This document shows positions 1,708 through 49,986 of a stretch of DNA of 64,000 nt, piece by piece. Position 1 is the stretch's first letter. Every line of letters starts with the position of its first letter. The notes under the pieces are model-generated. The model had not been told where the DNA came from and did no database searches. It was given only the letters and a program-made list of their open reading frames with translations. The translations under genes were made by a program, and so were the position numbers. This stretch comes from Paramoeba atlantica. Its lineage: Eukaryota; Protista; Discosea. The stretch lies in NCBI GenBank assembly GCA_977017575.1, contig CDRNVI010000009.1:496001-560000 (forward strand). Reading direction: 5' to 3'.

Positions 1708-1709
1708 GA

Positions 1710-1780
1710 TCTGGCGTGCAATTCAAGGCGTGCATAATATCTGGCGTGCAATATCTGGCGTGCAGTATCTGGCGTGCATA
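1710..1780. repeat. Short imperfect tandem repeat (core ATCTGGCGTGCA, about 5 copies) upstream of the CRE-A ORF
   Basis: The repeats are read directly at 1710-1780. Confidence 0.75.
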
Positions 1781-1832
1781 ATATCAACAACAGACAACTA
1801 TTTTTGAAGCTTTGACTTGAAGCAAAAGCTAA

Positions 1833-28976: not shown

Positions 28977-30287
28977 TCACATTCGGCGGCCAGCGCCCCC
29001 CGCGGAGAAATCCGATGTGGGTGAGTACTGGGTCTTTCTGTTATTGTCCGAGGTGTAATTTGGGCGATAAGGTTCACTTGGCCTGAACCCACGACCTCGA
29101 GTCATACCACGTCCTCTTCCGAAATTTGCACTAGGATAAGTGGCACGACCGTATCCCCCACGTCGCGCAACTACTTTTCGCTGGTAGTTGACACTGTGTT
29201 CTATGCCATTCCCGATCACATCCGCCGGGTCTTTGTTCACCTCGTAGATCATTCGAAGATATCGTGGATCGGCTCCGCGATAAACACCCTGCTGCATGCG
29301 AAGATCGTCCAACGCTCTTTGCCCTGTTTGAACTTGTGCCACATTCTCTGGGTCAATTCCACCTCTTGCTTTAACGTCGTCTACCCAATGCTGCATTACA
29401 TCCCACATTGGTTGCAAATTTGGCGGTAAAGGATTTGGAAGTGCCAGGGCGGTTCGAATACGCAAAAGAAGAAAATCAACCCCGAACTCGCTATCCGTCG
29501 CAATGTATTTGTTCCACGTTCGGACATCGCGTACTTTAAATTCGTCGGCTTCTGGAATTGTTTCATCAGCATTTGTTTCACAAGGTTCCAATCGATCCGG
29601 CATAGCTGGTTCCGCTTTCACAATCTCGATTCTCGTGTAATTGAGTTTGGGATTAGGAAGGTGGTAGTTTCCCACATTATAGCTAATAACGACAGTTTTC
29701 TGCTCTTCAAATTCACTTTCTTCTATCGGAATACCGCGCCATGTTGTTGCTTCGCTTGGAGAACTTGTGGCCGCAAACCAAGTTACTTCTACCTCCAAGT
29801 CATATCGTGCAATCTTGTCCAAGATCTCCTGCACCTTAGAAGAAAGATTTTCTGGCTTGATGACAGGTAAGCTTGCGTACAACGCATTGGTAGCACTGTC
29901 CACGCAACAACGAAAAGTATTTGTCATGTCTTGGCGATCTTTCCGAACTGAGAAGGGAAAAGTTGAATGTGGCACTGCTTGTGTAGAGGGAGGTTCCGCC
30001 GACGAGGAACGAGACTGAAAAGCCTTCATTTCGTCGCGCACTATCCCTTGTAACTCTTTTCTCAACACTTCCTGCACATCTTGTCGGATGGTTCGGCGCA
30101 CATCTTCTTGAACAATCGCCATTCGCGATGTTAAATTTTCTAGCGATTGGTCAAGACGACTTACTCTGGTGGGTATATCACTGGTGCATTCCAACGAGTC
30201 CACACTTTCTACAGGATCGTCCCGACCTTGAGTTTGAAAAGCCACGGGAGCTTCTTCCTCGCGTGAGCGCGCCCGTGTAGATACCAT
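28977..30287 (-). CDS. YR1 Gag-like protein (MVSTRARS...), RG-rich C-terminus
   Basis: First ORF of the element, ATG 43 nt behind the SL exon, homologous to the gags of YR2 and YR3. Confidence 0.82.
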   Translation of the reverse strand: MVSTRARSREEEAPVAFQTQGRDDPVESVDSLECTSDIPTRVSRLDQSLENLTSRMAIVQEDVRRTIRQDVQEVLRKELQGIVRDEMKAFQSRSSSAEPPSTQAVPHSTFPFSVRKDRQDMTNTFRCCVDSATNALYASLPVIKPENLSSKVQEILDKIARYDLEVEVTWFAATSSPSEATTWRGIPIEESEFEEQKTVVISYNVGNYHLPNPKLNYTRIEIVKAEPAMPDRLEPCETNADETIPEADEFKVRDVRTWNKYIATDSEFGVDFLLLRIRTALALPNPLPPNLQPMWDVMQHWVDDVKARGGIDPENVAQVQTGQRALDDLRMQQGVYRGADPRYLRMIYEVNKDPADVIGNGIEHSVNYQRKVVARRGGYGRATYPSANFGRGRGMTRGRGFRPSEPYRPNYTSDNNRKTQYSPTSDFSAGGAGRRM

Positions 30288-30329
30288 CCCAAAAAATGTA
30301 GTATTACAGTAGGAAAACAAGAAAAATTG

Positions 30330-30365
30330 CAACAAGGTACAGAAACTGTATCTTTATCGTTAAAG
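30330..30365 (-). ncRNA. Retroposed spliced-leader exon (36 nt, CTTTAACGATAAAGATACAGTTTCTGTACCTTGTTG)
   Basis: Contains the euglenozoan SL core ACAGTTTCTGTAC and ends in TTG; identical at four loci; not followed by a GT intron. Confidence 0.85.
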
Positions 30366-30447
30366 AGAAAAGTATCATTTTATAATACAATTAGTCACTG
30401 ACATTCTATATTTCCCACTTCGGTGAATTATTATCCTTAAAGTCTCA

Positions 30448-30988
30448 GTTTTCATACCTCAACATATTCACCTTCTTGGTCACTTGCGAACGGGTAGTCC
30501 ACCCCACGCGGGGAGTGGATGGGGCATGGTGGGCGGGGCAAACGTTTCGTCGCGGAAATATGAAACAATATTCTTATATCAATCTTTATGCTAATACATA
30601 TTCACATGTACATTAATGTTATCTCACAAGTTGAATTTCAAAAACATGCGTACAATGCCCGCCGGCTATTCGGCAAAATAGCTCAATCATGTAAATTCAA
30701 AATCAATATTAAAATCAAAATGATGCGCTGGACAATTCTTATCGTAAACTCTTAGAATTGCGCCTCGCATCATAGGACAAATAAATTCAAACAGAAACAA
30801 ATCTCCTATAGTATGTTCAACCTCATCACTTTACTTTCAACCCATTCATATCATGATGTACATTATCAGATATCTTACTCCTGTGATTCACATTCAGATT
30901 CATATTACACATTCATATCTTGTTTTCATACCTCAACATATTCACCTTCTTGGTCACTTGCGAACGGGTAGTCCACCCCACGCGGGGA
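30448..30988 (-). mobile_element. Solo B1-A2-(partial B2) end of the YR4 family
   Basis: 67-bp direct repeat 30448-30514 and 30922-30988; about 30540-30754 is nearly identical to 44601-44816; junction hairpin at 30733-30760. Confidence 0.82.
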
Positions 30989-31413
30989 CCACCCAATCGC
31001 TAGTCCCTCGTACGTTCCATTCACCCTTTCGCACGTCCAGTTTGCTGCCGTCGTTGATTTAAATGTTCTTTTTTTTTTTTCTTTTTTTCGGGGTTAGGGG
31101 TTTTTTTTTATTTGTGTGTTGTATTATGTATTGCGTGCATCTATTTACTATCAATAATGTCCTCGGCTTACTGGGTCTGCAGGATTATTTTCGGATGATA
31201 CATAACGCGGGGATATTGCGAAGCCATGTCGTCGAAGCGTTTTCAATACTGCTTTTAATTCTGTTGTAATACCATCTGATTTTGAGACTGGGAGCTTGCG
31301 AGAGTAATTAGTTTATGGTGGGTAAGATATCTGGAAATTATAAACTATATTTATATCTTCGATTGTTACATAGAAAACTGTTGTTAATCTTACTCGTGTA
31401 ATTGTAATTTTCA

Positions 31414-31464
31414 ATGCCTACAACCCGTTCTCAGGCGGCCGCAGAGGTCGCGATGCGGCAAGAA
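31414..31464 (+). pseudogene. Displaced first 17 codons of the YR3 gag (MPTTRSQAAAEVAMRQE)
   Basis: Joins in frame to CAG ATG AGT at 36591 when YR2 is removed; the N-terminus resembles the other gag starts (MVSTRARS, MVQTRSKA). Confidence 0.75.
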
Positions 31465-31655
31465 TAAAACTCTTGGAAATGTAATTGGGCCTTTGTACTA
31501 GTGTCAGGAATTAAGGAAAACATGAAGGACTTATTCGTGAACTACGGCATGATATTATTTGCAAAATTAGACAGACTTTTCTTATTTGTATTTCGCACGA
31601 ATAAAAGTGGCCTTCTTGTTCTCTCTGTTCTATCTCTCTGTTCTCTCTGTTCTAT

Positions 31656-31691
31656 CTTTAACGATAAAGATACAGTTTCTGTACCTTGTTG
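31656..31691 (+). ncRNA. Retroposed spliced-leader exon joined at the AG acceptor of repeat A
   Basis: SL followed by ACAGACTTTT (31692) versus genomic TTAG followed by ACAGACTTTT at 31570/31571 and 36258/36259. Confidence 0.9.
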
Positions 31692-31733
31692 ACAGACTTT
31701 TCTTATTTGTATTTCGCACGAATAAAAGTGGAA

Positions 31734-32984
31734 ATGGTGCAAACACGTTCGAAAGCACATGATTCTCAAGAGGACTATGCCACGGATAGCGACACTGAAC
31801 AAACGTGCGGCACATATTACCCAAAACCGAATTCGACACAAATCACTTCGAGCCACTCACTTCCAGATGTTTTCCTCACCGAACAGGTCAATACAGTCGT
31901 GGAAAAGCTAACGCGTGCACTTGAAAAAGTCACTTCGAAGGTTGATGCGATGGAGGAGCGTGAACGGAAAAGGCGAAAAGAGACAAACATTACGGATCCA
32001 TCTGCACCGCGACACGGACAAGCACCTGGGAACACCTTATGTCCTCTTCCAACCTCCTTGAAAAAGAGATGCAGTGTGCCAGAAGAGCTCAACAAGCAAT
32101 ACGCCGCACAAAGGGTTATGCTCCCAGAGGAAGTAGAGAGTCAAGTCAATGAGGTTATGGCGACCGTGCAACAGAATGACATAGAAGTCGAAGTAACCTG
32201 GTTCCCCGTTGGAGGTAGGAAAGAGACAGGGACAACATGGCGAGGTACGGTAGAGGACAATGGAGACGAGGAAAATCCTATCATTGTTTCCTACCCGTGG
32301 GGTAACTATCCTCTGCCTAATAGCAACGTGTGTTATACGCGCATCGTGATATCAGCAAGTGAGCCAAAGATGCCAGGCAAATTGCCCGAATCGGACGATG
32401 AAACTGCACCATCAGAAGAGACGAACGACAGTTTCAACCTCCGGGACGTTACAACATGGAACACATACATTACCCAGGGGCCACTAGGGATTGAAATATT
32501 GAAACAGCGGTTGCGAACGGCGCTGGATCTCCCTTCTCGAATGTCACCACAGCTACAAGCCCTTTGGGATATCTTGTGTGCTTGGATAGACGATAGCGCA
32601 GAAAGAGGGGGCGTGAACAGCGACGCCGTCAATCACAAAAACGTCGGCCAAAGCACAGTTGACCAGATACGCATTCTGCAAGGAATATATCGAGGAGCAG
32701 ATGCTCGATATATACGCTCACAATACGTTACCCAGAAAGACCCACAGGACCGACTTGGTAATGTAATTGAGCAAAGCGTAACCTACAATCAAGCAACCAC
32801 GTATACGAGCCGTGGATCCCAGCGGACCCGCTATACGCCTCGCATGCCGATACGAGGGCGAGTATATGCAAATCGGACCCCCATAAATCGGACTGGCATA
32901 CTAGAACATGGCATTACGCGTCAAGCGACCATCGCACCACGCGCTCCGGATTTTCGTGGACGGGGGATCGGTCCACAGCACTGA
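31734..32984 (+). CDS. YR2 Gag-like protein
   Basis: ATG 42 nt after the SL; coiled-coil-like region and conserved EVEVTW..WRG..VSY..LP domain. Confidence 0.85.
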   Translation: MVQTRSKAHDSQEDYATDSDTEQTCGTYYPKPNSTQITSSHSLPDVFLTEQVNTVVEKLTRALEKVTSKVDAMEERERKRRKETNITDPSAPRHGQAPGNTLCPLPTSLKKRCSVPEELNKQYAAQRVMLPEEVESQVNEVMATVQQNDIEVEVTWFPVGGRKETGTTWRGTVEDNGDEENPIIVSYPWGNYPLPNSNVCYTRIVISASEPKMPGKLPESDDETAPSEETNDSFNLRDVTTWNTYITQGPLGIEILKQRLRTALDLPSRMSPQLQALWDILCAWIDDSAERGGVNSDAVNHKNVGQSTVDQIRILQGIYRGADARYIRSQYVTQKDPQDRLGNVIEQSVTYNQATTYTSRGSQRTRYTPRMPIRGRVYANRTPINRTGILEHGITRQATIAPRAPDFRGRGIGPQH

Positions 32985-33005
32985 CTCTCAAGAGTCCTCC
33001 CCCCG
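32948..33005 (+). promoter_or_regulatory. Putative recoding cassette: G_GAT_TTT slippery site, 6-nt spacer, GC stem enclosing the gag stop
   Basis: Equivalent sites at 29007-29013 (-), 37718-37724 (+), 43446-43452 (-) and 49670-49676 (-), with covarying stems. Confidence 0.8.
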
Positions 33006-35902
33006 AGGAAAAGCAAGTACACACCAATAAAAAGGAAGTTAAAAGATCAAATACAGAATCCAAAATACAAAAATATCAATATGAAGCAGAACACGAAAAC
33101 GAAAATAAAAATACAAAGTCAAATTACAATAAACAAAGCAAGTACAAAACGGAAAAACATTTATCAGCCAGTATTACGGACCAGCACCTCTATCCGACCC
33201 GTTTGCAAGACACAAACGGAAAAACTACCGTCCCACACGTGCAAATTTCGAATCAGCAATATCGATACCCACAGATCCACTACCCGACGTATCATCACCA
33301 AGGCTCATCGTCAGACCAATGGATCCCACATCAAAATATCGAATATCACCCAGCCACCGAGACACAACATACCCCAGGAACAGACCCCCTATTACGTTAT
33401 GTCCAATTTCCTCAACGTGACATCTCCTTCGGTAATGGAAGCGTTGAAGCCTATGTGGGCGGAGACAACATGGACTACCAGGTGCCGTCTGCTATGCCAT
33501 ATGCGGAGTTTGGGAATACCCATTACGGATACGGGGGTCATACGATTTATTATGGGACGCCCGATATCTACACAGACCAAGCTCACGTACCTAAAACACC
33601 TTATAGCAATTTTGAAGCGACTGGAACTCTCTACGCGGCAATCCCAAATGTACACGAAAGTGTTGATCCGCAAGGGGGCATCTATCCCACAGCACCAGGC
33701 GGCCCCAGTAACCAAGAAGGATTTGCAGAAAACGCTTATGAGCATGCCGGAAGACAGAGCAGTGGTTGCACTCCTTGCTTTCAAAACAGCTTCCCGGGCT
33801 GGGGAAATCGCCAAGCTACGCAGGAAGGATGTTATAGTGCTCCGCCCGTCACGTATTATCATCAACTGGGGTACGAAATCGAAAACCTCCAAGGCACAAC
33901 CATTCCGCCCCGACAATCTAGTGGTAATCGAGGGAGAAACCACCAGGCGTATCTACAACTACCTGAAGAGGTTAAGCCCGCATCAGCGGATCAGCAACTG
34001 TACAACACAAGACCTCACTCGCACGCTCAAGAAAGGACTGGGGAGCAATTACAGTTCCCACTCCCTCAAGCATGGATCAGTCCAATACCTGATGAGGCAA
34101 GTCGCCAAAGGCTCCATAACTATGCCGCAAGTCATGCACCTGGCCAAACACAAACAATTGTCAACCCTTATGCGCTATGCAGGTATGAACGAGACTACGG
34201 CACTGGCACTGGGAAGTCAGAAGCTGACCAAACTCCTATGAAATCTAAGACGCTCGAATACCAAGGTGGGTGGATCGGAATCACGGAGAAAATGCAGTAC
34301 GGTATTCGACGTACGATAACCAGAATGTTTCGCCGAACATGCCGCCCTACGGCGAAGCAGATGCAGACACTACCTATCCACGCGAAACATGTACCGCCGC
34401 TGTACCTGGAACGTTTAACTTCTTTGATGAATGCGCCTACGCGAGAACGCTTCACACAAGTGTGGGAACTACTTATTAACCCAACGAACGATGCACCAAT
34501 CACCACTATACCTCTCGTATCTCCCACATGTCTGAGCAAGAAAGACGTATGCATCTTGATCGATGTTGATGTCCTGGAAAGAGTAAATGACCAAACATTG
34601 CACAAATATCCGACCAAAGGAATCGTACACCCTTTTACGAACGTCGAAGAACGCGACACTGGATTACGTAGGCGATTTATTTGTTGGCCTAAAGAACATA
34701 ATGCTGCTATTGAGGATGCATATAAAGCTGACGTACCAATAGGACACCCCACGATGTATATGCCCGCCGTACAACAACAGTATGCAGTGAAGAGAGACCT
34801 CAGTTGTGGTTTTTACCAAGTAGAATTGCCGGTTGAAGCTCGGGCACATTATCGTTTCGCATATAACGGCGGCCTATACCAACTGAAGCGCATGCCCATG
34901 GGACATGCGTGCGCGCCAGAGATTCAACATATAGCAACCAGTGTCTTAGCTGGAGACGGGAAGTATACCTCATTGGCACATCGATTCAAGGGACAGTTAG
35001 ATATCTACCTGGACGGGATCCGCTTCAGTGGCACAGCAGAGCAAAGCCATGTATACGAACAGTGGCTGGAGGAACGGGCTAAAGATATTGGAATGACCTT
35101 CAAACCGAGTGATTCTTACATAGGTACGAACTACAATTTCCTGGGAATAGAATATGACCATAGCCAACAAAAATGCCGAATAGGAGAGCGTTTTCTCAAC
35201 AAGATCCCAAAACAATTACCCGAGTTGGCGCAACTTCACGTATACGAATCCTTAATTGCTCGCCTCATTTATGCATCCGCGGTATCAGGGATCTTATTAC
35301 CAAAGTACTATTGGGTGATAAAATATATTAGAAGACAGCTCTCAAAATTAAATAGAGGGGTGATGCAGGACACAGATACAATTGTGCCATCCGCTAACAT
35401 ATACCAGCAAATGAACGAATGGGTATACCAAATACATAAGAATCCATGGCGCGCTTGCGCAGACGTCAGTACCCCAGTAACAGTAATGTACACCGACGCG
35501 TCGAAAGCTGGATGGGGCGCAGTATTATTCCCTTCAATAGGCCCAATGACGGCCACAGGCAGCTTATGGGAAGAACCCTATGAAATAAACAAAGCAGAAA
35601 TTTTAGCGGTCGAGCGGGCCTTACATACGTTTGAGGCGTATTGGCACGAGAACAAACTTCTCCACGTATACGTAGATAACACTAGTGTGCAAGCCGCCAT
35701 GACACGTAGTTGGGCGGATTCAGAGGGATTGGCCGAGGTATTATATCGAATACTAACCTATTTACGCGAGATGAATATTATACATTCAACATCATACGTT
35801 AATACAAAACAAAACCTCGCAGATCCGTGGAGTCGCGGAAAATTTGATACTTCGCATGGGGTGATACTTGCGAAGGGGTGGAGCGGGCGAGCCCCGTCGT
35901 AA
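32948..35902 (+). CDS. YR2 Pol in the -1 frame: extension overlapping the YR ORF, then RT and RNase H
   Basis: Frame verified open from 32948 to 33203 and through ORF 33203-35902; KRDLSCGFYQ, MPMGH, YLDG, TDAS, E, DN and NLAD motifs. Confidence 0.88.
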   Translation, partial: GFSWTGDRSTALTLKSPPPEEKQVHTNKKEVKRSNTESKIQKYQYEAEHENENKNTKSNYNKQSKYKTEKHLSASITDQHLYPTRLQDTNGKTTVPHVQISNQQYRYPQIHYPTYHHQGSSSDQWIPHQNIEYHPATETQHTPGTDPLLRYVQFPQRDISFGNGSVEAYVGGDNMDYQVPSAMPYAEFGNTHYGYGGHTIYYGTPDIYTDQAHVPKTPYSNFEATGTLYAAIPNVHESVDPQGGIYPTAPGGPSNQEGFAENAYEHAGRQSSGCTPCFQNSFPGWGNRQATQEGCYSAPPVTYYHQLGYEIENLQGTTIPPRQSSGNRGRNHQAYLQLPEEVKPASADQQLYNTRPHSHAQERTGEQLQFPLPQAWISPIPDEASRQRLHNYAASHAPGQTQTIVNPYALCRYERDYGTGTGKSEADQTPMKSKTLEYQGGWIGITEKMQYGIRRTITRMFRRTCRPTAKQMQTLPIHAKHVPPLYLERLTSLMNAPTRERFTQVWELLINPTNDAPITTIPLVSPTCLSKKDVCILIDVDVLERVNDQTLHKYPTKGIVHPFTNVEERDTGLRRRFICWPKEHNAAIEDAYKADVPIGHPTMYMPAVQQQYAVKRDLSCGFYQVELPVEARAHYRFAYNGGLYQLKRMPMGHACAPEIQHIATSVLAGDGKYTSLAHRFKGQLDIYLDGIRFSGTAEQSHVYEQWLEERAKDIGMTFKPSDSYIGTNYNFLGIEYDHSQQKCRIGERFLNKIPKQLPELAQLHVYESLIARLIYASAVSGILLPKYYWVIKYIRRQLSKLNRGVMQDTDTIVPSANIYQQMNEWVYQIHKNPWRACADVSTPVTVMYTDASKAGWGAVLFPSIGPMTATGSLWEEPYEINKAEILAVERALHTFEAYWHENKLLHVYVDNTSVQAAMTRSWADSEGLAEVLYRILTYLREMNIIHSTSYVNTKQNLADPWSRGKFDTSHGVILAKGWSGRAPS
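32985..34241 (+). CDS. YR2 tyrosine recombinase, in frame behind the gag TGA (first ATG 33081)
   Basis: ASRAGE, HSLKHG and KHKQLSTLMRY catalytic motifs. Confidence 0.9.
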   Translation, partial: LSRVLPPRKSKYTPIKRKLKDQIQNPKYKNINMKQNTKTKIKIQSQITINKASTKRKNIYQPVLRTSTSIRPVCKTQTEKLPSHTCKFRISNIDTHRSTTRRIITKAHRQTNGSHIKISNITQPPRHNIPQEQTPYYVMSNFLNVTSPSVMEALKPMWAETTWTTRCRLLCHMRSLGIPITDTGVIRFIMGRPISTQTKLTYLKHLIAILKRLELSTRQSQMYTKVLIRKGASIPQHQAAPVTKKDLQKTLMSMPEDRAVVALLAFKTASRAGEIAKLRRKDVIVLRPSRIIINWGTKSKTSKAQPFRPDNLVVIEGETTRRIYNYLKRLSPHQRISNCTTQDLTRTLKKGLGSNYSSHSLKHGSVQYLMRQVAKGSITMPQVMHLAKHKQLSTLMRYAGMNETTALALGSQKLTKLL

Positions 35903-36590
35903 GTAACAGCAAGTAAAGATCTAGCAAGTACATAAGATAAATATTTAGATGCACTTTTGAGACCATACAAAATTACGTTCTACTACTAGAATAAGCCGAA
36001 TGGTAAACCGCGACGGAATATTAGACGATACACACATAATAGATGACAACAATACAGCTACTAAGTTGTTTATTAAACAATGGATTAATTAATATGTGTT
36101 ACCCAGAGACGGCTTGTCAAGGAGGATTCAACGTGTTGTCAAGGCCCAATTATAAAACTCTTGGAAATGTAATTGGGCCTTTGTACTAGTGTCAGGAATT
36201 AAGGAAAACATGAAGGACTTATTCGTGAACTACGGCATGATATTATTTGCAAAATTAGACAGACTTTTCTTATTTGTATTTCGCACGAATAAAAGTGGCC
36301 CACCCACCTCCCCGCTCCGCGCGGGCGAGCCCCGTCGTAAGTAACAGCAAGTAAAGATCTAGCAAGTACATAAGATAAATATTTAGATGCACTTTTGAGA
36401 CCATACAAAATTACGTTCTACTACTAGAATAAGCCGAATGGTAAACCGCGACGGAATATTAGACGATACACACATAATAGATGACAACAATACAGCTACT
36501 AAGTTGTTTATTAAACAATGGATTAATTAATATGTGTTACCCAGAGACGGCTTGTCAAGGAGGATTCAACGTGTTGTCAAGGCCCAATTA

Positions 36591-39500
36591 CAGATGAGTT
36601 CTCATCCAGAGGAACAAGTGGACGAGCCATTACCAATCTATCCGTCTTCAAACAAGCGCAGAGCGACGCGTCAACGCTCGCGTTCTCTTCCTCGTCTATC
36701 TAATCCTTTTACCCGAGTTGTAGAGGAGGAAATCCCGGAAAAAAGTGTTCCAGACCCAAGAGTGCACTCAGCGAACCAAATGGTGGAAGTGTTTGGTGGT
36801 CTGTCGAAGCAGTTGGAGGCGCTCCTTAAGAACCAGCAGGAGCAGCAGTCTCTTTGGGAGCGGCGTAGCACCCAAGAAAGTGAACGGTTTGAAACGCTTT
36901 TAAGTAATATACGGATCGGATCTTCGCTCCATGGCGGCGAACGGGCACATATGGCATCAGCTCCCGACACACCGGGAGATCAACCTTTGACATTGGACAA
37001 AGTCCGGGATGAGGTACGGAAGATAAAAGATCTATTGGATGATTATGTTGTGGAATTGAAGGTAACCTGGTATTGGACAGGAGAAACACCAGTGTGTGCA
37101 CAAACATGGAGAGGCGTGGCTCACACGACGGGAGATGAAACCGATTCAATCATTGTAACTTACCCTCACGGAACGTCGGAGCTCCCTCTGCCTGGTGTGA
37201 CTTACACCAAGATCGAGGTTGTGGGTAAAACACCAATAGACAGCGTTACTCAGGACAGCGTCGAAGAGAAAGAATTTGTTCTCCACGATGTCAGTACTTG
37301 GGAGTCCTTGTTGGTGCCTCAGAAGGATTATGATGTGTTGGAGAATCGTCTCCGTGTGGGATTACGTATGCCGACTACATTAACTCCGGAATTGCAATAC
37401 GTGTGGGATCTCTTCCATCAATGGGTACTCTTGACGCAGGGCAAGGGTGGGCTCAATCTTGCAGATAAGAAGCATTTAAAGATGGGCCAAATGCTACTGG
37501 ACCGTTTGCGGATAAAGCAAGCCATTCTCCGAGGAGCAGACCCGCAATACGTGGAAACTCATTATGGTGTTCAACAGGACCCAACGGATCAGTTGGGGAA
37601 CATGCTCGTTAGCAGCATAAATTACAACAAGACTCGAGGCAGGGCTGGCGGTCACCGAGGACGACGAGCATATTACGGTCGAGGAACACAGGAGCAGAAT
37701 TCCAAGGTACCGCGATCGGATTTCGCGCTGCGGGGGTCTGGCGGGAAGTGACTCGGAGAAGTCCGCCCCCGGGCAAAAAGCCAGTCTATACAAAGAATAA
37801 AATTAAAGGAAAATTTAGGGAGCAAAAAGAGCAGGGAGAATTTTTTAAGTCAAAGCAAGAAGCAAGAGAATGTACAGCGGATAATAAAAGCAAGTTTAAA
37901 GCGTATAACGCAGGATCAAGTCAAGTCAAGTCAAAGGCAAGGCAAGTCAACACATCTGCAGTCGGAGGAAACATACAGCCCTGTTTCGCACCCAAAACGG
38001 ACCCCGCAAACCGTTTTGAGGGACTCCCCCGTCACACAACCAACATGCGCGTTTTTGAGAGACGTGCGATATGTCCTCGCGGAGATGGGAATCACAAGAA
38101 CAGAAATGCAAAAACATCTTCTAAATTTATGGGCCCGAACTACGTGGATGACCCGCGCACGATTACTCCGATAAATGCGAGCCGCTCATCTTTCGTTCGA
38201 CGACGACAACGTCGTCGCATTCATTTCCGGACTAAGGATCACCGTTCAAACCAAGCACACTTACCTGAAACACTTAATTTCCGTACTTGCGAAGGCTCAA
38301 AAGCCTACAACACATGCGGAACTTCTCGCCAAAACTTTCGCCAGGACCGGGGCAGCGATACCGACCCGACAAGCACTCCCAATTTCCAAAGATCAGATCC
38401 GGCTGTTAATTCCCCTAATGCCAAACGATATGAAGCTGGTAGTGCTCGTCGCTTACAAAACGGCTTCCAGAGCGGGCGAAGTTTCAAAAATGCGGCGCAG
38501 AGATGTTATTACCCTTCGGCGGGACCGGGTTGTTATCCATTGGGGCCAACATACGAAGACTACCCGAGCGCAGCCGTTTCGGCCGGACTCTTTCACGGTG
38601 ATCGAGGGCGAATTTACGGAGGAAATTTACAAACTCTTGAAGAATCACCAATTAACCCAACGTTTCAGTCGAGTTACTACGGAGGGAGTGACCAATTTTC
38701 TGCGGGACCATTTGGGCAAGGGATACTCATCCCACAGCCTCAAACATGGGGCAGTGCGTGCCATGATGGAAGAAGTGGCACACAACAACCTCACTATGGA
38801 GGATGTAATGCGGCTATCAAAGCACAAACAGATGGCAACGTTGCTCCGGTATTCCGGGGTGACGGAAACTGCTGCCTTGGCGCTCGGCACACAGCGGAGC
38901 ACCAGGACACTCTGACGTCCAAGGTTCCACTTGGGTATGGTATTAAGAGGCCTAGCATAGAGAGATTAGGCGTACATTGGGAACCTGCCATGCAGGACGC
39001 TCTTTGGAACCCAAAGTTGGTGTGGTCCCGCTTGCACCGGAAGACAATCCGCCCTACCTCAGATATGATGGTGAAGGTGCCTTTGCATGCGAAGTACGTA
39101 TCCCCTCTGTATTTGGACTGTGTGCGCGAATTAATGAATCCCCAAACGCAGCACAGATTCGATTATTTATGGAAAGAAATTTGTAATCCATCAGTGCCCT
39201 AAATTATTCCGCGCCCAAGTCCAGTGAGTCCGTCCGAATTGACTCACAATGACTTGAAACAATTGCTTGAGGCGGACATAATTGAACGAGTCGAGGATAC
39301 TTTGGCGAATCCTACTAAGGCATGGGTAATCCCATTCACCACTTTGGAGGACAGAGAGGGAGCTTTTAGACGCCGATTTATTACGTGGACAAAGATCCAT
39401 AACGCTGCAATCGAAACTTCTTACGTCGCACATGTTCCATTAAAGCAGCCAGTTGAATATGTATCGCAAGTACATGAGGATGGTGCGGTTCTCCGTGATT

Positions 39501-40830: not shown

Positions 40831-43800
40831 CTGTCGTTTCATCGCAGCTAAGCAGGAGGTATTGTCTATATACAAGTCGATACACGTGTCGCGATTAAAG
40901 TGATGAACGAAGTGCTCCAAAGCAAGACGAACGGCCCTCGCCTCCGCTTTGTTGACTTCGTACTCGTATTCCTCGGGCCATTTATCTCCAGCACACAGCA
41001 TTTGCCCATAATCTAAGTATAGAACGGCGCCCCATCCCTTGGACGAGGCATCTGTAAATAACGTGTGATTGTGCGGAACGGCATCTGGGTGCGGCAAAGG
41101 GGTTACAGGAATATTACTCGTCAACTTTTTATTCCATCTGGTCAATGAGATTCCGACATAAGCAGGCAACATTGCGCGTTTAATTCCCAAATCTGGATTC
41201 CGATTTAATGCATTTATGCGTCGTCGAACAATTTTCAATATCATGTGATACTCCGGTAACGGTTCTCCCAAAATTCCGGATGCATATATCATTCTACCTA
41301 CAGCTGATTCTAAATCGTCGTATGTTATCGTACGGAAACTATGTTTTCTCAACCGTGCTACAATTTTCGGCACAAGCGCTACTTTCTTCTCGCGATGTAA
41401 ATATGACACTCCATTGAAAATATAATTTTGTTGGGGAGGAGTCCCGTGGTCTTTAAATCTTGCATTTATGAATGATGACCTGCGATCTACGAATTCACCG
41501 AACTTACTCGCCGTCTGGAAATCCCCGGCAAAACGAATTCCATCAATGTAAACATCGGCGCCTTTTACCGGAAATCTATCTTCTTTTGAACAGTATTTCG
41601 GGTCGCCAGCCAAAACTGCGGTAATCGAATGCATCAACTCTGGAGCACATCGATGTCCCATGGGCATAACTGTTAGTTCATACAAGTGGCCGTCACCTGA
41701 TCGAAAACGAAATTTTGCTCTCGAGTCAATTGGAATTCCTACTTGATAAAAACTGCATGCGAGATCCCTTTTAATTCCGTAATCTTGCTTCACCTGGTGT
41801 AAATAGTAGGCAGCATGTCGTAAAGGAATGGAAGGCACGTACGATTCCCGAATTCGAGCGTTGTCTGCTCTCGTCCATGCGATGAATCTTCTTCTTTCAC
41901 AGATACCATCGTCACCGTCAGGCTCCACTACAGTGAATGGAATGACCCATTGATTTGTCGGGCGTTTTGTCTCTTGTTCGTGGGACACTTTCGATACAAA
42001 GCCTGCGTCAATTAACAACTGTACATCGCTTAATGGGACAGAGAAAAATTGAGGAGATTCTTTTTCTGGTTCTGGTAACAGATCAAACATTTCACGTCGT
42101 AGGTACTCGCAGCGCTGACGCGTTTCCTCATTCATTAAACTCATGACTCGTTTGAAATTAATTTGTGGAATGTCAAATTTCACATGTAGCGGTAAATGAA
42201 AGTTCTCTTTCGTCGCTAGCTTGGTAGCTCTTTTAGTTCGCACGATAGTATGCTTGATTTTCTCCTGCGGCATGTCCCGCAGGAACTCGCGAAATAAAAA
42301 CCCTGATTCTATAGCGTTTTCAGGAGGGAGGTCGCTTTTGCGGTTCCCAACGCCAAAGCTGTTGTCACTGGGTCGCTATTGTATCGGAGGAGTGATTCGA
42401 TCTCTTGATGCTTCGCCAAATTTTTCAAATCTTCCAATGTTAACTTTCCCTGTGCTACCTCTCGAAATAGCATTGTAATTGCCCCCCTCTTGGCTGAATG
42501 AGTCCCGAACCCCGCACCTAGAATGTCGCGAATCTTGCTGTCCATCTTTCGCACTGTTGTTCGACACAGGACGTCGTAAGACTTCAGAATACGTAGGTGA
42601 TCCGCTATTTCGAGAGTTCCCTGTCCCGATATGACTGTATACATTGATTTTTTCCACGGGTTGCATCTTGAGGTCTTTGTGCCTCGACCCCACCATATTA
42701 TGATCCGGTTGGAGTTTACTTCCACAAAATTTTCCTTTCTCAGGGAAGCCGTTTCGCTCCATCTCGATGCACTCTTCCAACATATTAGCATTGTGACACT
42801 TTCGTTCGCCTCCAGGTTTGATCTTAGACGACAAAGAAGGTGTGGTGTCAGCGGCGTCATTTGGTGCATCGGCTCTCCCGCTCCCTCTGCTTGCAGGGCT
42901 CGAACAAAGAACTTGAGTGGATTTATGTTGGCACCCGCTAGGTTGAATAAGGTCATGAGATTTCTGCCGTACGTTAACCTGGTCTGCACTGATATTGGTA
43001 ACATTTGCAAGAACGTTACCGCGTGGATTGGATTTCGTTCGATTCTTCGCCAGGTACAGAATCCCTGAAACCTTTCCCATAGACGCGCACGAGTTGACCA
43101 AGTCCTGCTTGCCCACATCGACGCTATGGCGTCCAGCGCTATCCGTACTTCGTGCGTTACCAAAGTCACTCCCATGAGATGCTGTGTCAATTTCCTTCTC
43201 GCTTGGTTTGATTGTTGCAAACTCAAAACTCCTCCGTATACTTGCGTCGAGTTCACCAACCTTCCGTTCAAGTTTACTGAGCTTGTCACATGTTCCCCTG
43301 AACAATTCTTGAAACGTTTGGTTACTAGCGAGGTTTCCGCCCCAAAGCGCCCCCGTTTCCGGGGGGCCGGGACACTGGCAATTTTCGGGTGGTCGTCCTA
43401 TAACGACTTTCCGCTCTGATGAGCGGTGCCAGACACCCGCGACCGAAAATCCGGCTGCTGGCGTCGATGCGGACACTGGCGTAGGATATGATCGGGGGAA
43501 CGACAATTGAAACACAATAAACGATTACGGTAAGGTGGTCCACCGGGAAATATGTTGGCTTGCATCGACGGTCCCGGTGGTGGTGGTGGTGGTGGTGGGA
43601 AACCTTGGAACGGTGGTGGGTAATAGGGCGCAGAAAAGTTCGCAGCGTAATACTTCTTCTTGGCTTTATCCCGTTCAGTCAATTGGTCTGCTACGTGCTG
43701 GTAAAATTTGTCATTAGAACGTTCATCCTTGCTAATTTTACGGTGTACATCTTCAACGTCAATTTTTCGGGCGCGCCAGTAAGCGTCTCGCAAGCTTTGT

Positions 43801-44816
43801 ACGATTGCGTTTCCTAACTCAATAAATGTACCCTTGTTCCAATCTTGCGTTTGACGCGCTAGTAAGATCCATCTGCCCAATAAATTGTCAAAGTTGCGTT
43901 CTTGCTGCTTTACAAAATTTTTATCATAAAAATACTGGTTTAAGCGCAATCCGAATTCGGGTGCCTCTCGCAATTCCCTCATCAGGTCTCTGATCTTGAA
44001 TCCATCGTCATTGCGTGCATTTATCCATGCTTCGTAGGTCACGGGTTCGTAATGTTGAAGCTTGAGCGACGGCGGAACTGTTTCTTGTCCAGAGACTTCT
44101 TGGCTACCATACTGTGGCGGAAGGGGCCGTCCTCCACCAAGAGATGGTGCTTGTTGAACACTCAGCGATGCGTGTTCTTGATCCAAAATTTCGATAACGT
44201 AATAATTCAATTCCGCATGCGGAAACGGATATTCTGTAGTAAGGTCGTCTTCCCAAACTGCCCAGATCTCAATACCATCTCGTCGGGCCTTTCCATGAGA
44301 TGTTGTTAGTGGCGCAGAGGGGCTGTCTTTACGGCGCCAGGAGGCTTTCAAATGTACTGTGGCCGGCTCCGTCGTACACGTCAAAAGTTTTTCGCATACA
44401 TTGGACACAACGGCATTTAGGTCTTTGTTTCGAAGTGGTTCACTCGGTATTTGCTGTCCAGTCGGGGAAGAGCCTCTTGACGATACTTGTTGGGTAGAAT
44501 CGGAAGTCATGGCAAACTTTTCGTCGCGGAAATATGAAACAATATTCTTATATCAATCTTCATGCAACAAGGTACAGAAACTGTATCTTTATCGTTAAAG
44601 CAAACTTTTCGTCGCGGAAATATGAAACAATATTCTTATATCAATCTTCATGCTAATACATATTCACATGTACATTAATGTTATCTCACAAGTTGAATTT
44701 CAAAAACATGCGTACAATGCCCGCCGGCTATTCGGCAAAATAGCTCAATCATGTAAATTCAAAATCAATATTAAAATCAAAATGATGCGCTGGACAATTC
44801 TTATCGTAAACTCTTA
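40828..44816 (-). mobile_element. YR4: A1 44601-44816, SL, gag 43398-44510 with CCHC knuckle, YR 42309-43397, Pol in the -1 frame (TAG at 42376), RNase H truncated
   Basis: CFNCRSPDHILRQC; ASRWSE, HSAKRG and KHQ..LLRY; KRDLACSFYQ, YIDG and TDAS; the RNase H lacks the final N.AD motif. Confidence 0.88.
44565..44600 (-). ncRNA. Retroposed spliced-leader exon joined at the AG acceptor of the YR4 repeat A
   Basis: SL followed by CATGAAG versus genomic ATTAG followed by CATGAAG (AG at 44653-44654); 52-nt UTR duplicated (44513-44564 and 44601-44652). Confidence 0.9.
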
Positions 44817-44943
44817 TAAGGCCCTTTCTTTTGTTAAGTCCCTTTCTTTTGTTAAGGCCCTTTCTTTTGTTAAGACCGTTTCTTTTCTTAAGACCCTTTC
44901 TTTTGTTAATGACCTTTCTTTTGTTAAGACCCTTTCTTTTGTT
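44817..44943. repeat. 18-bp satellite block (GTTAAGACCCTTTCTTTT), about 7 units
   Basis: Read directly. Confidence 0.95.
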
Positions 44944-45983
44944 GGCTAGGGGGGACCTTCGATGAATCTTCATCGAAGGTGTTTTTGACTTTTTTTGACT
45001 TTTTTAACTTTTTGTTTTTGAACGAATTTTTCCATTGGCTGTTGAAAACACGTTGCATGAAACATATAATTTCATTTTAAATTCAATAATGTTTTGTTTT
45101 TTTGTCTGAATTCTGACTTTCCGTTTTCTTTCACATTTTGGCTTGGGGGTACGTTCGTTGATTTCTCAACGAACGTACCCTGTGACCGTAAAAAATATGC
45201 AGGACCTTAGAGGGAGGAGGAAGAAAGGCCCAACTGATAACTACTTGATAATCTTGATAATCTTGACCAACTACCTTGATAACAAATTTTAGCACCCATT
45301 CGTGGGAAGCAATTGGCGAAGCCCAACTACCTTGATAACAAATTTTAGTACCCATTTTGGCCGCGCGGGGGCCCCCGCGTGAGCGGGGGTGCGCGCGGCC
45401 GCGAAACGGCGAGGGCCCGCGTGAGCGGGCCTGAGCCGTACCCCGCGTAGGGTTCCCCTATGCGTCGTTAGTGGGAAACAATTTGCGAAGCTCACTGAAT
45501 TTCGTAGTTTTCGCTACGCAGGCGTTGTCAACGTATATAGCGAAGTGTAGGATACTGAACGCACGGAAAAGGAAAATCAAAAAAAATTCTTGGATGTTCC
45601 ACAAAAGTCCTTGACTTATGCAAAAGTCCTTGATTTCCACCGTAAATTTCCGTTCGTTGAGCACTCAACGAAAATCCGGCACTTCGTTGAGTACTCAACG
45701 AAAATCCTGTGTTTACCCCTTCCGCAGGATTGTCGCTCAAAATATTTATATGGATCAGTCAAAAACGCTTCGATGAAGATAAACTGAAGAAACGGTGAAA
45801 TTCCTCTACGAGCCTTCACAAAACACTTCGATGAAGCACCAAAAAAGTCAAAATGTCTATATGGATCCGCGAAAAACGTTTGCGTGAAGATTTAAAAAAA
45901 TAAAAGAAAAGTCAAAAACACCTTCGATGAAGATTCATCGAAAGTGTACAACTTTCAATGTGCTTCATCGAAAGTTGTACACT
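44944..45983. mobile_element. Non-coding palindrome-rich module with perfect 36-bp inverted repeats (44958-44993 and 45907-45942); MITE-like, function unknown
   Basis: Inverted repeats verified base by base; TTCGATGAA motif about 7 times; several internal hairpins; no credible ORF. Confidence 0.5.
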
Positions 45984-46022
45984 TGTTAAGACCCTTTCTT
46001 TTGTTAAGACCCTTTCTTTTGT
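45984..46022. repeat. 18-bp satellite, about 2 units
   Basis: Read directly; abuts the B2 end of YR5. Confidence 0.9.
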
Positions 46023-49000
46023 GAATTTCATTTTGTGTGAATATCGTACTTTGTAGAGATACTATATAAAGTATACGCCCATTCAGGGTAAGGTTTGCAA
46101 TAACTATCAAAACATATAGTTGCAGAATAGAATGATATCAACATTCGTTTTGTCGACCTATAATATAAACTACCTAAATCAAAACTATACGATAGGGCAT
46201 CGCGCCTGGCCGGCGCGGGGGCTGGTGGGTGGTCGCAAAAATTATCGAAGTAAAGTGAAGAAAATATTGTCCTAAGAATCTTCTTCTAAGAAATATTATA
46301 TGAAATAACGAAACAAAAGTACATTACACGTAAAGTTTATGCGTAAAAGTGCAGTATATGCTAAAGATGTATTCAAGATTGCACTGGTTGGTGCGTGCAT
46401 GAAACACGTTAACCACTGCACACTTCCTAAAATTCTTTTCGTAAACTCATAGAATTTCATTTTGTGTGAATATCGTACTTTGTAGAGATACTATATAAAG
46501 TATACGCCCATTCAGGGTAAGGTTTACAATAACTATCAAAACATATAGTTGCAGAATAGAATGATATCAACATTCGTTTTGTCGACCTATAATATAAACT
46601 ACCTAAATCAAAACTATACGATAGGGCATCGCGCCTGGCCGGCGCCACCACCCTCTCGCTACTAACTTTCCACCCCTTTCGCGTTATCAGGGTCTGCCTC
46701 GGCATAACGAAGTCGGCTGATTTTGTCGGCAGGGTTACTTTTCGTGCTCACGTACCGCGCATCTACGGCAATTCCTTGCTTTTTAATTACATTCAAAACC
46801 TTTTCAAGTTCGTCAGAAACGCCGGAAGATTTCGATATTTTCCTATTGACGGCTGCCATGCACGAAACGTTGTCTACATATAAATCTAGACACGTCCCTT
46901 CCCGAAAGTGGTGTTTTAATTTTTCAATACTAAGATAAACGGCACGAATTTCTGCCCGATTGACTTCATAGTCAAACGATGCATCCCACTTACCGCCGAC
47001 ACAGATCATTTCTCCATAGTCCGTGTACAACACCCCTCCCCATCCAACCTTGGAGGCATCGGTGTACAAAACATGTTGGTGAACGACTGTATCCGGTCGA
47101 GGTTGAGGAGCAACGGGTATATTAGCTCGTAACTCGTCTCTCCATTTTGCTAGACCACACCTAGTAACCTTGGATAATGGCACAGCAACATCCGCCAATA
47201 AAGGGTAGCGATTCAGCTCGTTTATGCGGCGTCGCGTGATCCGTAAAATATTGTGAAAGCGGGGGAGGTTCATTCCTAATATCCCGGACGAGTAGATAAA
47301 ACGGCCAACACAGGCTTCAAGATCACTGTACGTCAGTATTCCAAAATGGTTCGCCTCTATTTTAGACAACACCTTCGGTCCAAGTGCGACTTTATGCGCT
47401 TGATGGTCGTAAAGCACGCCGTTATAAACATATTTCGTCAGTGGATAACCTTCTGCGGATTTAAATTTCGCGCTTATGCTTTTTGCCCTTTGATCGATAA
47501 AGTTCTCGTAATGTTGTACGGCATTGAAAGAGCCTGCGAACCGAACGCCATCAATATATACATCAATGGCTGACGAAGTAAAGCCATGTGATTGCTTGCA
47601 ATAGTGGGAATGACCCGCTATAGTGGCGGTCACTGTGTGCATAATTTCGGGCGCGCATCTGTGACCCATAGGCATTACTGTCATTTCGTACATTTCTCCC
47701 TCATGGGAGAACCGAAACTTTGCGCGTGACTCGAGGGGTAGTCCAATCTGAAAGAAACTACACGCCAGGTCACGTTTGACTGCGAATGAAGAGCTTACAT
47801 TATGTAGATAATACGCGGGATGTGAGAGAGGCACGTACGGCTCATATTCTTTTAACGACATATTGTCGACTCGCGTCCAAGCTATGAATCTTCGCCTCTG
47901 GAATTCTCCATCATCTGTGCGTTCAACTACTGAAAAGGGAATAATCTCTTGCATCGTTGGACGGTCCACCAATTCATTTTCCCCGACGCGGGAAATAATT
48001 CCATGTTCAACAAGAGCGCGAACATCCTCATTCGCAAGCCCCCCGCTCACCCGACCAGTTTTCGTTGTCCCCTCCGGGAGCTTAGCCAACATATCCCAGA
48101 CCTCTTCGAAACGGTACAAAGTCGCTGGGTTCATCCATTTTCGAACTTTTTCATAATTCATCTACGGAGGAAAACGTTTACTAAAAGTGAAACCGATTCT
48201 ATAGATGTAAATGTAATTGTGCATATTGATCTAAAAGTTTCCTTTTATCTTATATCATTCAAAATGGAACTATCTTAATCCGAAAAACATATCACTTGCT
48301 ATTGAACTAACGAATGGGTGATCGCCGGCACCCACCCGAATAGATCTTGAAAAGATCTATTCGGGGAATGTCAGGCTTTATATGCAATGGTAAATTCAGA
48401 TCGTCGGGGCCGGCCAATCTAGAGGAACGGCGCGGTCGCACTATTGTGTGACGTTTTTTGAGAGGATAATCATCGAGGTACGATTCGAAGTCTTTATAGC
48501 CCATCATATTGGTAATAGTTGTGTCGCTTTTTGGGTCCCTAGTGCAAGAGCTGTTGTCAAGGGGTTCTCGTTGTATCGGAACAACGATTCTGCTTCTTGA
48601 TGTTTCGCTAGACGTTGCACTTCTTCCAGGGTTAAGAGGCCTCTTGCCACTTGTTCGAATAGATACGTTATCGCCCCTCGTTTCAGCGAATGCGTTCCGT
48701 AGCCGTCCCCGAGAGTCGAACGAATTATTGTGTCCATTTCGCGCACGGTTGTTTTGCAGAGGAGAACCCCTTTTTTCATCTTTGAAACTTGTTGCGCTAT
48801 TTCGCTCGTCCCGTCCCCCTCCAGCACAGCGTACATCGACGCCCGATACGGGTCTAATCGAGTCGTCTTCGTCTTTCGTCCCCACCATATGACTACTCTT
48901 GCGCTCGTGACGTGGCAAAATTGTTCTTTGACTAAGTTTGACGTTTCGGTCCACCGGGACGCCGCCTTCCAACATATTAGTGCGGCTATGTCCTGGGATC

Positions 49001-49986
49001 TCGTTAGATTGCTTCGCAATTGCGCGAGAAGTAGAGGCGTTATCGGTTTCATTGAATCGGCTCCGCAGCCCCCTCGGATAACAATGTTTTGCAACGAAAT
49101 TTTATCGCATTCGTGTTCATTTGTAGACCATTGAATATGGCCATCAAGTTTCGGGCGTATGTGAGTTTCGTTGTGACCGCTATTGTCAACGTTTCCAAGT
49201 ATGCTACGGCGGACAAGGGAGTCACCTCTAGGCTTTTCCTGCAACAAAACTCGTTTAGTTGGTGCCACAAGCGTCCCCTCGTGGCCCACGTGCTTGTTGC
49301 CCACATTCCTCTCATAGTTTGAAGGGAGGTTTCTATGGCTGCGTCTGACTTTTTTGTCGCGGTCAGCCTCCACAAAAGATTGTCTTGTGCGGTTTTCCTG
49401 TCGTTTACAACGTTTGTTATCACCCTCCTTGACGTTATTTGGTCCTGAGGGGGCGCAGTATCCGCAATTCTAACACTTTGTCGAATCTTCCTCTTCTTCG
49501 CTTTTTGCGAGGTAGTTTGACATGAGTTCACTGATCCGGACGATAAAGTCTCGGAAGCTGGAGTACTTTTCACCCTTCGTTTCTTTCGAAGAGTACGAGC
49601 TGTTACGAGTGGGGGTCCCTAGTAGGACCTCTTACTGCCTTGTATGGCAGAGCCGTCCACCCGTTTTTCGAAATCCCCCGTCTTTGCGCTGGGACAATCT
49701 TTTTGCAAGTGTCCAATTTGATGACAAATAAAGCACACACGCTTTTTCCTTCCGACGCTACCTGGTCCCGCAAAAATTATCGAAGTAAAGTGAAGAAAAT
49801 ATTGTCCTAAGAATCTTCTTCTAAGAAATATTATATGAAATAACGAAACAAAAGTACATTACACGTAAAGTTTATGCGTAAAAGTGCAGTATATGCTAAA
49901 GATGTATTCAAGATTGCACTGGTTGGTGCGTGCATGAAACACGTTAACCACTGCACACTTCCTAAAATTCTTTTCGTAAACTCATA
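46023..49986 (-). mobile_element. YR5 with complete split direct repeats; gag deleted except the knuckle (49619-49768), YR frameshifted near 49055, RT/RNase H ORF 46662-48161 open
   Basis: A1 49769-49986 equals A2 46234-46451 (218 bp); B1 46452-46645 equals B2 46023-46216 (194 bp, 1 mismatch seen); manual translation gives CFICHQIGHLQKDC. Confidence 0.92.

Follow-up and report, generated by a model that had tools for sequence, protein, structure and literature searches.

Tyrosine recombinase frames kept open directly behind the gag stop codon of VIPER-type retrotransposons, with readthrough as a tentative explanation

The tyrosine recombinase (YR) frame of VIPER-type retrotransposons in an assembly of Paramoeba atlantica begins immediately past the gag stop codon with no ATG at its entry, as the reading frames examined here support. 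The ATG-less stretch that follows this stop is kept free of further stop codons by selection. Ribosomes coming from gag most likely make the recombinase, by whatever means they enter its frame. Leaky termination at the gag stop, which would yield a Gag-YR fusion, is tentatively favored as the means of entry.

The window analyzed here is a stretch of 64,000 nucleotides (contig CDRNVI010000009.1, positions 496,001 to 560,000 of the forward strand), and positions below are counted from its first letter. Five VIPER-type elements, E1 to E5, are located in it and have the following features.

31459-36590, plus strand: E2, a complete VIPER-type element with all three reading frames intact
31459-31612 (A1), 35883-36152 (B1), 36147-36300 (A2) and 36321-36590 (B2), plus strand: E2 split direct repeats, 99-100% identity
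31734-32984, plus strand: E2 gag, ATG at 31734, stop TGA at 32982-32984
32985-34241, plus strand: E2 YR ORF, in frame with gag, 418 codons and a stop codon, with its first ATG at codon 33 (33081)
32771-35902, plus strand: E2 pol frame, 1043 codons, shifted -1 from gag, with RT and RNase H
28977-30287, minus strand: E1 gag, ATG at 30287, stop TGA at 28979-28977
27678-28976, minus strand: E1 YR ORF, in frame with gag, 432 codons and a stop codon, with its first ATG at codon 139
36534-37751, plus strand: E3 gag, stop TGA at 37749-37751
37752-38915, plus strand: E3 YR frame, in frame with gag, interrupted by a premature stop at codon 141 (38172-38174), after which it resumes to codon 388
43398-44510, minus strand: E4 gag, starting with ATG at 44510 and stopping with TAG at 43400-43398, with a CCHC zinc knuckle close to the end
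42309-43397, minus strand: E4 YR ORF, in frame with gag, 362 codons and a stop codon, with its first ATG at codon 75
49619-49861, minus strand: E5 gag-end remnant, 80 codons, stop TAG at 49621-49619
48504-49618, minus strand: E5 YR region, N-terminal part (to about 49052) in the gag frame, core in another frame (ORF 49373-48504) through an indel

The pol frame of E2 opens 70 codons ahead of the gag stop, overprints the entire YR ORF and then continues into RT/RNase H. In profile searches the YR ORF matched PF00589 above the curated cut-off (E 1e-07), with the Phage_integrase domain at residues 258-402, and thus encodes a tyrosine recombinase. RT_RNaseH also scored above its cut-off, and RVT_1 gave a weak match of 19.4 bits, below cut-off. 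Together with the split direct repeats and a gag-YR-RT/RH gene order seen in all families examined, these domains identify VIPER-type YR retrotransposons. YR cores can be aligned across nine families with 40 invariant columns, and among named organisms Papus ankaliazontas and Diplonema papillatum have the nearest YR relatives. The elements carry no protease and no obvious start for their second gene, YR. Many copies are degenerate. The pol frame of the E1 copy has a TAA 12 codons past the gag stop. Kinetoplastid-type spliced-leader relics are fused to gag leaders, and the relic of E2 ends at 31692, about 40 nt upstream of the gag ATG. An Rfam search of the window matched no family. The wider sample comprises 50 loci of this genome, in which the E4-like clade (more than 100 matches) is represented by four lineages only.

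A first-pass annotation of this DNA had described the YR frame as open in the gag frame right after a single gag stop in all five elements. The junction is indeed present in each, with TGA-CTC in E1-E3 and TAG (TAG-G) in E4 and E5 as reported, but not every gene is intact. Frame 0 stays open behind the stop for 433 codons in E1, 419 in E2, 363 in E4 and 190 in E5. In E3 it is open for 141 codons up to the premature stop, and in L023, a related copy, for 387. Translated searches (tblastn) place the YR domain in the gag frame for E1-E4; in E5, whose gag is cut to 80 codons, only the N-terminal part (49336-49052) is in this frame and the core (49052-48513) is indel-shifted. The first in-frame ATG is found far downstream at codon 139 in E1 and codon 75 in E4, as had been noted, and at codon 33 in E2 and codon 112 in the E3 family (L023). 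The arrangement of one stop followed by an open frame 0 is shared by all five elements and at least 12 diverged families of this genome. Three apparent exceptions proved to have the same layout plus one indel each. For the L018/L019 family, entry by frameshift (-1 to YR, -2 to pol) was considered and rejected, since one stop-adjacent indel explains both shifted frames more simply.

The identity of the gag and YR frames in five of five elements, originally counted as evidence, is weak when taken alone. Because pol is entered by a -1 shift ahead of the gag stop and its frame covers all of YR, YR is locked into the gag frame and this identity needs no selection for readthrough. Frame identity alone, being inherited and pol-locked, is not beyond chance, whereas the stop-free stretch is. 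In a shuffle test the pol protein was held fixed and its synonymous codons were shuffled 5000 times over the 637 codons that separate the gag stop from the first in-frame ATG in 12 families. Frame 0 contains no stops where 16.0 are expected, and none of the 5000 shuffles reached zero (minimum 7). The same shuffle predicts 52.8 stops in the +1 control frame, where 47 are observed. Over the entire linker the count is zero against 23 expected, and for the four window families it is zero against about 9.8, the product of the per-family probabilities of zero being about 1e-6. Protein identity across the linker is low in either frame (15-46% versus 12-33%) and gives no means of telling the two apart.

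The same layout recurs in two D. papillatum elements and three metagenomic relatives. It can also be read from the published coordinates of the Trypanosoma cruzi VIPER element, in which ORF1 spans 169-1509, YR 1510-2517 and RT/RH 1386-4214 (PMC5146736). By these coordinates YR continues in the ORF1 frame immediately past the ORF1 stop, and RT/RH, in the -1 frame, begins 124 nt upstream of this stop (PMC5146736; PMC6681497). Judged from sequence, the layout is shown here to be deeply conserved, from kinetoplastid-type to diplonemid hosts. Two candidates for natural Gag-YR fusions were discarded. The gene model of the Diplonema protein KAJ9461657.1 skips the stop by a predicted intron and merges two elements, and open-frame values of 748-765 aa were not reproduced at the same places (364 aa). 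A gag search for such fusions returned only gag-sized ORFs.

The end of gag also contains a -1 frameshift cassette, consisting of an in-phase slippery heptamer, a downstream structure and a -1 ORF that is open across the site. In E2 its parts are as follows.

32948-33017, plus strand: recoding cassette, with the slippery heptamer G_GAU_UUU at 32948-32954 and a 3' arm region reaching to 33017
32962-32966 (GGGGG) with C-run 32999-33004, plus strand: stem 1 of the cassette
32983-32996, plus strand: stop hairpin GACTC/GAGTC, holding the gag stop at 32982-32984

Heptamers in this genome are G_GAU_UUY, G_GGU_UUU or G_GUU_UUC, 10-26 codons before the stop (10-17 in the window's five elements); Diplonema and two metagenomic relatives have G_GGA_AAC. 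The cassette helices are 79-87% paired. Between clades, pairs change on both sides, for example from GGGGG/CCCCC to GGGTGG/CCACCC and from CTGGC/GCCAG to CGAGT/ACTCG; within the A-G clade the helices hardly vary and covariation is weak. The small hairpins first reported at the stop read as stated: GACT(C)/(G)AGTC in E1-E3, and GTCGT/ACGAC in E4 and GGTCC/GGACC in E5, where the stop sits in the loop. However, a hairpin containing the stop is melted when that stop occupies the A site, so it is better read as the third stem of the frameshift pseudoknot. A readthrough stimulator would be expected about 8 nt after the stop, and none is established in this usual place. Single-sequence folds 3' of the stop give only small local hairpins in shifting register, and the 5' arms of the conserved helices lie upstream of the gag stop. 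The proposal that one RNA element has three outcomes is supported to this extent: the stop follows an in-phase slippery heptamer at a distance of 8-26 codons and falls within its pseudoknot, so that a single cassette could give three products.

In the pathway that we favor, element RNA capped by the spliced leader would be translated from the gag ATG. At the in-phase G_GNU_UUY heptamer and its three-stem pseudoknot, some ribosomes would slip -1 into pol and make Gag-linker-RT/RNase H. The remainder would arrive at the gag stop (UGA or UAG, never UAA), and most would terminate there to give Gag. A small share might read this stop as sense and continue in the gag frame, via a fast-evolving basic linker, into the recombinase. 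The resulting Gag-YR fusion could enter particles along with Gag. Both the entry by readthrough and the making of a fusion protein are what we infer from sequence. The ATG-less entry and the preserved stop-free stretch speak for the readthrough that the first-pass annotation called probable, but the frame count, the hairpin and the stop context add little weight, and stop-adjacent ATGs in four other lineages make termination and restart a real alternative.

The identity of the gag stop speaks for readthrough as well. It is never TAA in 19 lineages (16 TGA, 3 TAG), compared with TAA at 5 of the 24 intact stops of YR and pol, a contrast that is only borderline among related lineages. The contexts TGA-C and TAG-G are not distinctive. 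TGA-C occurs at 12 of 16 TGA stops of gag and is equally common at those of YR and pol in these elements (6 of 10); UAG-G occurs three times at gag.

The main rival to readthrough is stop-coupled restart. Here, termination at the gag stop would leave part of the ribosome on the RNA, and translation would restart at or next to the stop on an ATG or another codon, producing free YR and no fusion. An ATG is present at codon 1 or 2 in 4 of 17 lineages, against an expectation of about 0.3-0.5: TGA CAA ATG in family D, TGA ATG in the metagenomic L055 and L056, and TGA ATT ATG in L057. These ATGs, far above chance, are left unexplained by readthrough, and restart would equally account for a frame that is open from the stop onward. 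Calicivirus restart tolerates non-ATG codons, and relatives of totiviruses swap frameshift, fusion and stop-restart at one junction. Against this, the nearest ATG in the window's five elements is at codon 33, 13 of 17 lineages would need a non-ATG restart, which is unusual in nature, and L055-L057 may share one origin of their ATG. We consider restart unlikely.

Somewhat less likely again is separate expression of YR. Either it would have an RNA of its own, made by spliced-leader addition at an internal acceptor downstream of the gag stop, or ribosomes would start on the first in-frame ATG by internal or leaky initiation; the open stretch would then be untranslated. In 12 of 17 lineages no ATG of another frame comes between the gag stop and the frame-0 ATG, and in families A-K the first ATG lies upstream of the conserved YR block. 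In B, C and K an ATG start would therefore yield a complete enzyme, which counts against readthrough. A short C-rich tract followed by AG can also be read just past the stop in the A-G families. However, an untranslated stretch should have gathered some of the 16 expected stops. In families B, C, C2, K and K2 an in-frame ATG is not reached until 56-139 codons past the stop, and in B, C, K and K2 one to four out-of-frame ATGs come before it. Overall, out-of-frame ATGs show none of the depletion that is a signature of scanning (12 observed versus 13.2 expected), so scanning from a separate mRNA is argued against. The intact D. papillatum element (copy 1) has no ATG for 193 codons past its UGA. 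Its first ATG lies 24 residues beyond the conserved Trp of the YR N-domain, so a start there would cut off a conserved motif. Spliced-leader relics occur only ahead of gag, and none precedes YR in any locus searched. A search for sequencing runs turned up four DNA-type entries from a single study and one run guessed to be RNA, which gave no contig for the many-copy family L034 and is uninformative on expression or internal spliced-leader addition.

It is very improbable that no dedicated mechanism exists, the open stretch being a by-product of pol overlap and RNA or composition constraints while many copies use recombinase from other copies: the pol lock does fully explain frame identity, and the poor linker conservation in both frames and the many degenerate copies fit such a reading, but shuffles conditioned on the pol protein still expect 16-23 stops with the +1 control as expected, and the feature persists from kinetoplastid-type to diplonemid hosts.

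The elements can be compared with several known systems. VIPER and TATE, YR retrotransposons of kinetoplastids typified by VIPER of T. cruzi, have the same gag-YR-RT/RNase H order, A1 ... B1-A2-B2 repeats and a YR gene overlapped by RT/RH; the elements described here differ in residing in another, apparently kinetoplastid-type protist and in forming many diverged families. VIPER likewise has a split-repeat pattern of a 5'-terminal A1 and a 3'-terminal B1-A2-B2 (PMC6681497). The VIPER descriptions consulted here list three ORFs without discussing how YR is translated (PMC5146736; PMC6681497). No paper proposing readthrough was found, but the layout itself was already implicit in the T. cruzi coordinates (PMC5146736).

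As in gag-pol of murine leukemia virus (UAG-G plus a pseudoknot), a downstream enzyme lies in the gag frame behind a single leaky-type stop, which is UAG-G in E4 and E5 (UAG GGA in E5). The viral pseudoknot lies downstream of the stop, beginning at a distance of about 8 nt, and the virus makes Gag-Pol, whereas here the pseudoknot straddles the stop and belongs to an upstream -1 slip site, and the in-frame product would be Gag-recombinase. Coronavirus-type -1 cassettes with three-stem pseudoknots have an in-phase heptamer that a spacer of 5-8 nt sets apart from two nested or pseudoknotted stems with an inner hairpin, and a zero-frame stop inside the structure; the elements resemble these, and the dianthovirus heptamer GGAUUUU is comparable to theirs. 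Unlike in those cassettes, the zero frame is proposed to continue past its stop. The nsp2 site of PRRSV (G_GUU_UUU, -2 and -1 shifts) also splits ribosomes into three products at one short RNA site, as proposed here, but uses two frameshifts and a protein trans-activator instead of frameshift plus readthrough. The L018/L019 family even has G_GUU_UUU with all three frames open, the PRRSV heptamer, although one indel is the simpler reading. Stop-restart junctions of caliciviruses, victoriviruses and hypoviruses have adjacent stop and ATG, as in family D and the three metagenomic relatives; the window's five elements differ in having no adjacent ATG.

We know of no account of how YR retrotransposons express and package their recombinase. 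One possibility, somewhat less secure than readthrough itself, is that a cassette of about 70-90 nt at the gag end is ancestral to VIPER-type elements across Euglenozoa, including VIPER of T. cruzi. From a single capped RNA it would yield Gag through termination, Gag-Pol through a -1 frameshift and Gag-recombinase through readthrough, with YR overprinted on the Gag-Pol linker, and some lineages would have swapped readthrough for stop-restart. Because T. cruzi VIPER and Diplonema share the layout, the idea is testable in organisms with existing proteome and ribosome-profiling resources. Should readthrough fail, a conserved stop-free, ATG-less stretch would still need an explanation. If it is true, Gag-YR would be made by readthrough beside Gag-Pol by frameshift at the same gag end, a combination that we have not found described for any retroelement, and this would explain why the recombinase gene has its place inside the pol linker.

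The five retroelements in the window (VIPER-type elements E1-E5) encode gag, a tyrosine recombinase (YR), and reverse transcriptase/RNase H (RT/RNase H), in that order. All five gag stops lie where the first-pass annotation had placed them, each with an open gag frame immediately behind it. Its further claim that YR occupies the gag frame in every element holds for E1-E4. In E5, only the first part of YR does so, its core having been moved out by an indel. In E3, a premature stop interrupts the YR frame at codon 141. There is also a third frame, -1 to gag, which becomes open 20-70 codons ahead of the gag stop in E1-E4 and 3 codons ahead in the degenerate E5. This pol frame spans the whole YR gene and continues into RT/RNase H; in E2, it is open for 1043 codons without a break, and the +1 frame is riddled with stops. 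The same layout is found in at least 12 diverged families among the 50 loci examined in this genome, which has more than 400 further candidate copies.

Loci L018/L019, L040 and L043 are not true exceptions, since each differs from the common layout by one indel. In L018 (1166-1172) and L019, G_GUU_UUU lies in the gag frame where all three frames are open, with YR -1 and pol -2 relative to gag. One indel next to the stop explains these frames; alternatively, they may reflect a -1/-2 double shift by analogy with PRRSV. The pol frame of E1 contains a TAA at 28944-28942 (-), 12 codons behind the gag stop. At this site, the near-identical copy L014 (1400-1425) reads ...CCAGTTAAAAAC, and its pol frame is open for 952 codons. 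E1 is therefore broken in pol and not in gag or YR.

Several families carry a kinetoplastid-type spliced-leader relic fused ~20-45 nt upstream of the gag ATG, and the DNA copies of these elements stem from trans-spliced RNA. Since the relics are fused ahead of gag, the elements descend from capped, full-length RNAs in which gag is the first ORF. The split repeats of E2 follow the pattern described for VIPER of T. cruzi and Crithidia (PMC6681497).

Complete element and spliced-leader relics (...AACGATAAAGATACAGTTTCTGTACCTTGTTG)
31459-36590: E2, complete, with split direct repeats A1 ... B1-A2-B2
31648-31692: spliced-leader relic
30337-30360 (-): spliced-leader relic
44571-44594 (-): spliced-leader relic
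54450-54473 (-): spliced-leader relic
Further loci L010, L036, L040, L046, L051: relics at gag leaders

The neighbouring non-LTR element also carries a fused relic; a non-LTR element with RT occupies 50864-54415 (-). E5 is flanked by a satellite of 18-nt period (region 50002-50757), beyond which the DNA is AT-rich over a long distance (35% G+C) and strongly strand-skewed (AT skew about -0.5; region 54000-64000).

An in-phase slippery heptamer (G_GAU_UUY, G_GGU_UUU or G_GUU_UUC) is found in every family, 10-26 codons upstream of the stop. Behind it are helices in pseudoknot topology, GGGGG/CCCCC and CTGGC/GCCAG, with the stop between them. These pairs are altered on both sides between clades (GGGTGG/CCACCC in the E4 clade, CGAGT/ACTCG in family K2). 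The hairpin reported at the stop is real; its stem differs in sequence in families K (E4), L and K2 yet still pairs. It is now assigned to the frameshift pseudoknot, as the inner of its stems, because its 5' arm sits inside the ribosome during stop decoding. Pol has to remain -1 to gag, and the overlap fixes YR at +1 to pol, so indels that preserve pol keep YR in the gag frame. The in-frame count of five out of five therefore stands as an observation but not as independent evidence, inheritance and this pol lock accounting for the consistency.

The pol lock places no bar on frame-0 (gag-frame) stops anywhere from the gag stop to a YR start codon. These were counted in shuffles that keep the pol protein constant and draw its synonymous codons anew according to the codon usage of pol. 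The 637 codons, from 12 families, that separate the gag stop from the first in-frame ATG contain no stop versus 16.0 expected, and the minimum among 5000 shuffles is 7. The control +1 frame has 47 versus 52.8 expected. Across the whole linker leading into the recombinase, there are 0 versus 23 expected. Linkers are nearly unalignable between families, and the absence of stops therefore needs continuing selection. This pattern indicates gag-frame translation of the ATG-less stretch. On sequence grounds, ribosomes must reach the YR frame either from gag or at the stop that ends it.

In the window's elements, readthrough to Gag-YR would be the simplest route, and we give it slightly less than an even chance. 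Stops in UGA-C or UAG-G context are leaky in eukaryotes. The gag stop is UGA or UAG in 19/19 lineages (UAA in none), versus UAA at 5 of 24 YR and pol stops. UGA-C is equally common at these other stops. Arguments from stop identity and context are soft, the lineages compared being related. No readthrough stimulator is established at the usual position, and no readthrough proposal for VIPER-type elements was found in the literature searched.

In the chief competing reading, ribosomes would instead restart at the gag stop where they have just terminated, which is unlikely for the window's elements. Elsewhere, an ATG lies directly or one codon behind the stop in 4 of 17 lineages, far above chance, and readthrough has no need of it.

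Stop-adjacent ATGs
L011 (family D): TGA CAA ATG
L055:2711-2716, L056:1788-1793 (metagenomic): TGA ATG
L057:2046-2054 (metagenomic): TGA ATT ATG

This suggests that stop-coupled restart operates in these four lineages; non-ATG restart may serve the remainder.

Separate expression of YR is more doubtful still for the window's elements. Behind the stop there is no in-frame ATG for 139 (family B, E1), 112 (C, E3), 99 (C2), 75 (K, E4) and 56 (K2) codons. In B, C, K and K2, 1-4 out-of-frame ATGs precede the first in-frame one, and overall such ATGs are undepleted, matching composition (12 versus 13.2 predicted). Judged by these counts, the pattern does not fit a separate YR mRNA whose leader is scanned by ribosomes. 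Spliced-leader relics were found only ahead of gag, and none before YR, in any of the loci examined. That YR has no dedicated mechanism is very improbable for these elements, and a small share of the odds is assigned to none of these readings.

Tyrosine recombinases usually carry the Arg of H-x-x-R in their second catalytic box. Here this box is HS-x-K-(H/R)-G in all families (for example, 33384-34238), with an invariant Lys at the place of that Arg and no Arg after it in the E1-E3 clade. Gag ends in a CCHC zinc knuckle (CFNCRSPDHILRQC; 43401-43470 (-)) in the E4 clade and in an Arg/Gly-rich tail without this knuckle in the E1-E3 clade (28980-29100 (-)). Elsewhere in the genome, an open frame at G000:C92:46949-47935 measures 754 aa in one search versus 364 aa in another, at the same place and frame, and one at G000:C84:9044-9895 measures 937 aa; these are possible fused ORFs.

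A YR-core profile found 1178 proteins, the named ones belonging to the prokinetoplastid Papus ankaliazontas and to Diplonema papillatum. The architecture of gag, one TGA, and YR open in frame recurs in two elements of Diplonema and on three metagenomic contigs. There, too, YR is overprinted by a -1 pol frame, which is open from 35-67 codons before the TGA, and four of the five have the canonical heptamer G_GGA_AAC. Diplonema copy 1 has three intact ORFs, and its YR frame lacks an ATG for 193 codons, the first lying 24 residues past a conserved Trp motif. The Diplonema gene model KAJ9461657.1 (1630 aa; L054:3001-11459), in which a predicted intron bypasses the gag stop and pieces of two adjacent elements are merged, is probably an artefact of annotation rather than a fusion protein. 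The T. cruzi VIPER consensus places ORF1 at 169-1509, YR at 1510-2517 and RT/RH at 1386-4214 (PMC5146736). These coordinates are arithmetically equal to the layout seen here. It is plausible that the history is mixed, the junction having alternated between readthrough and restart.
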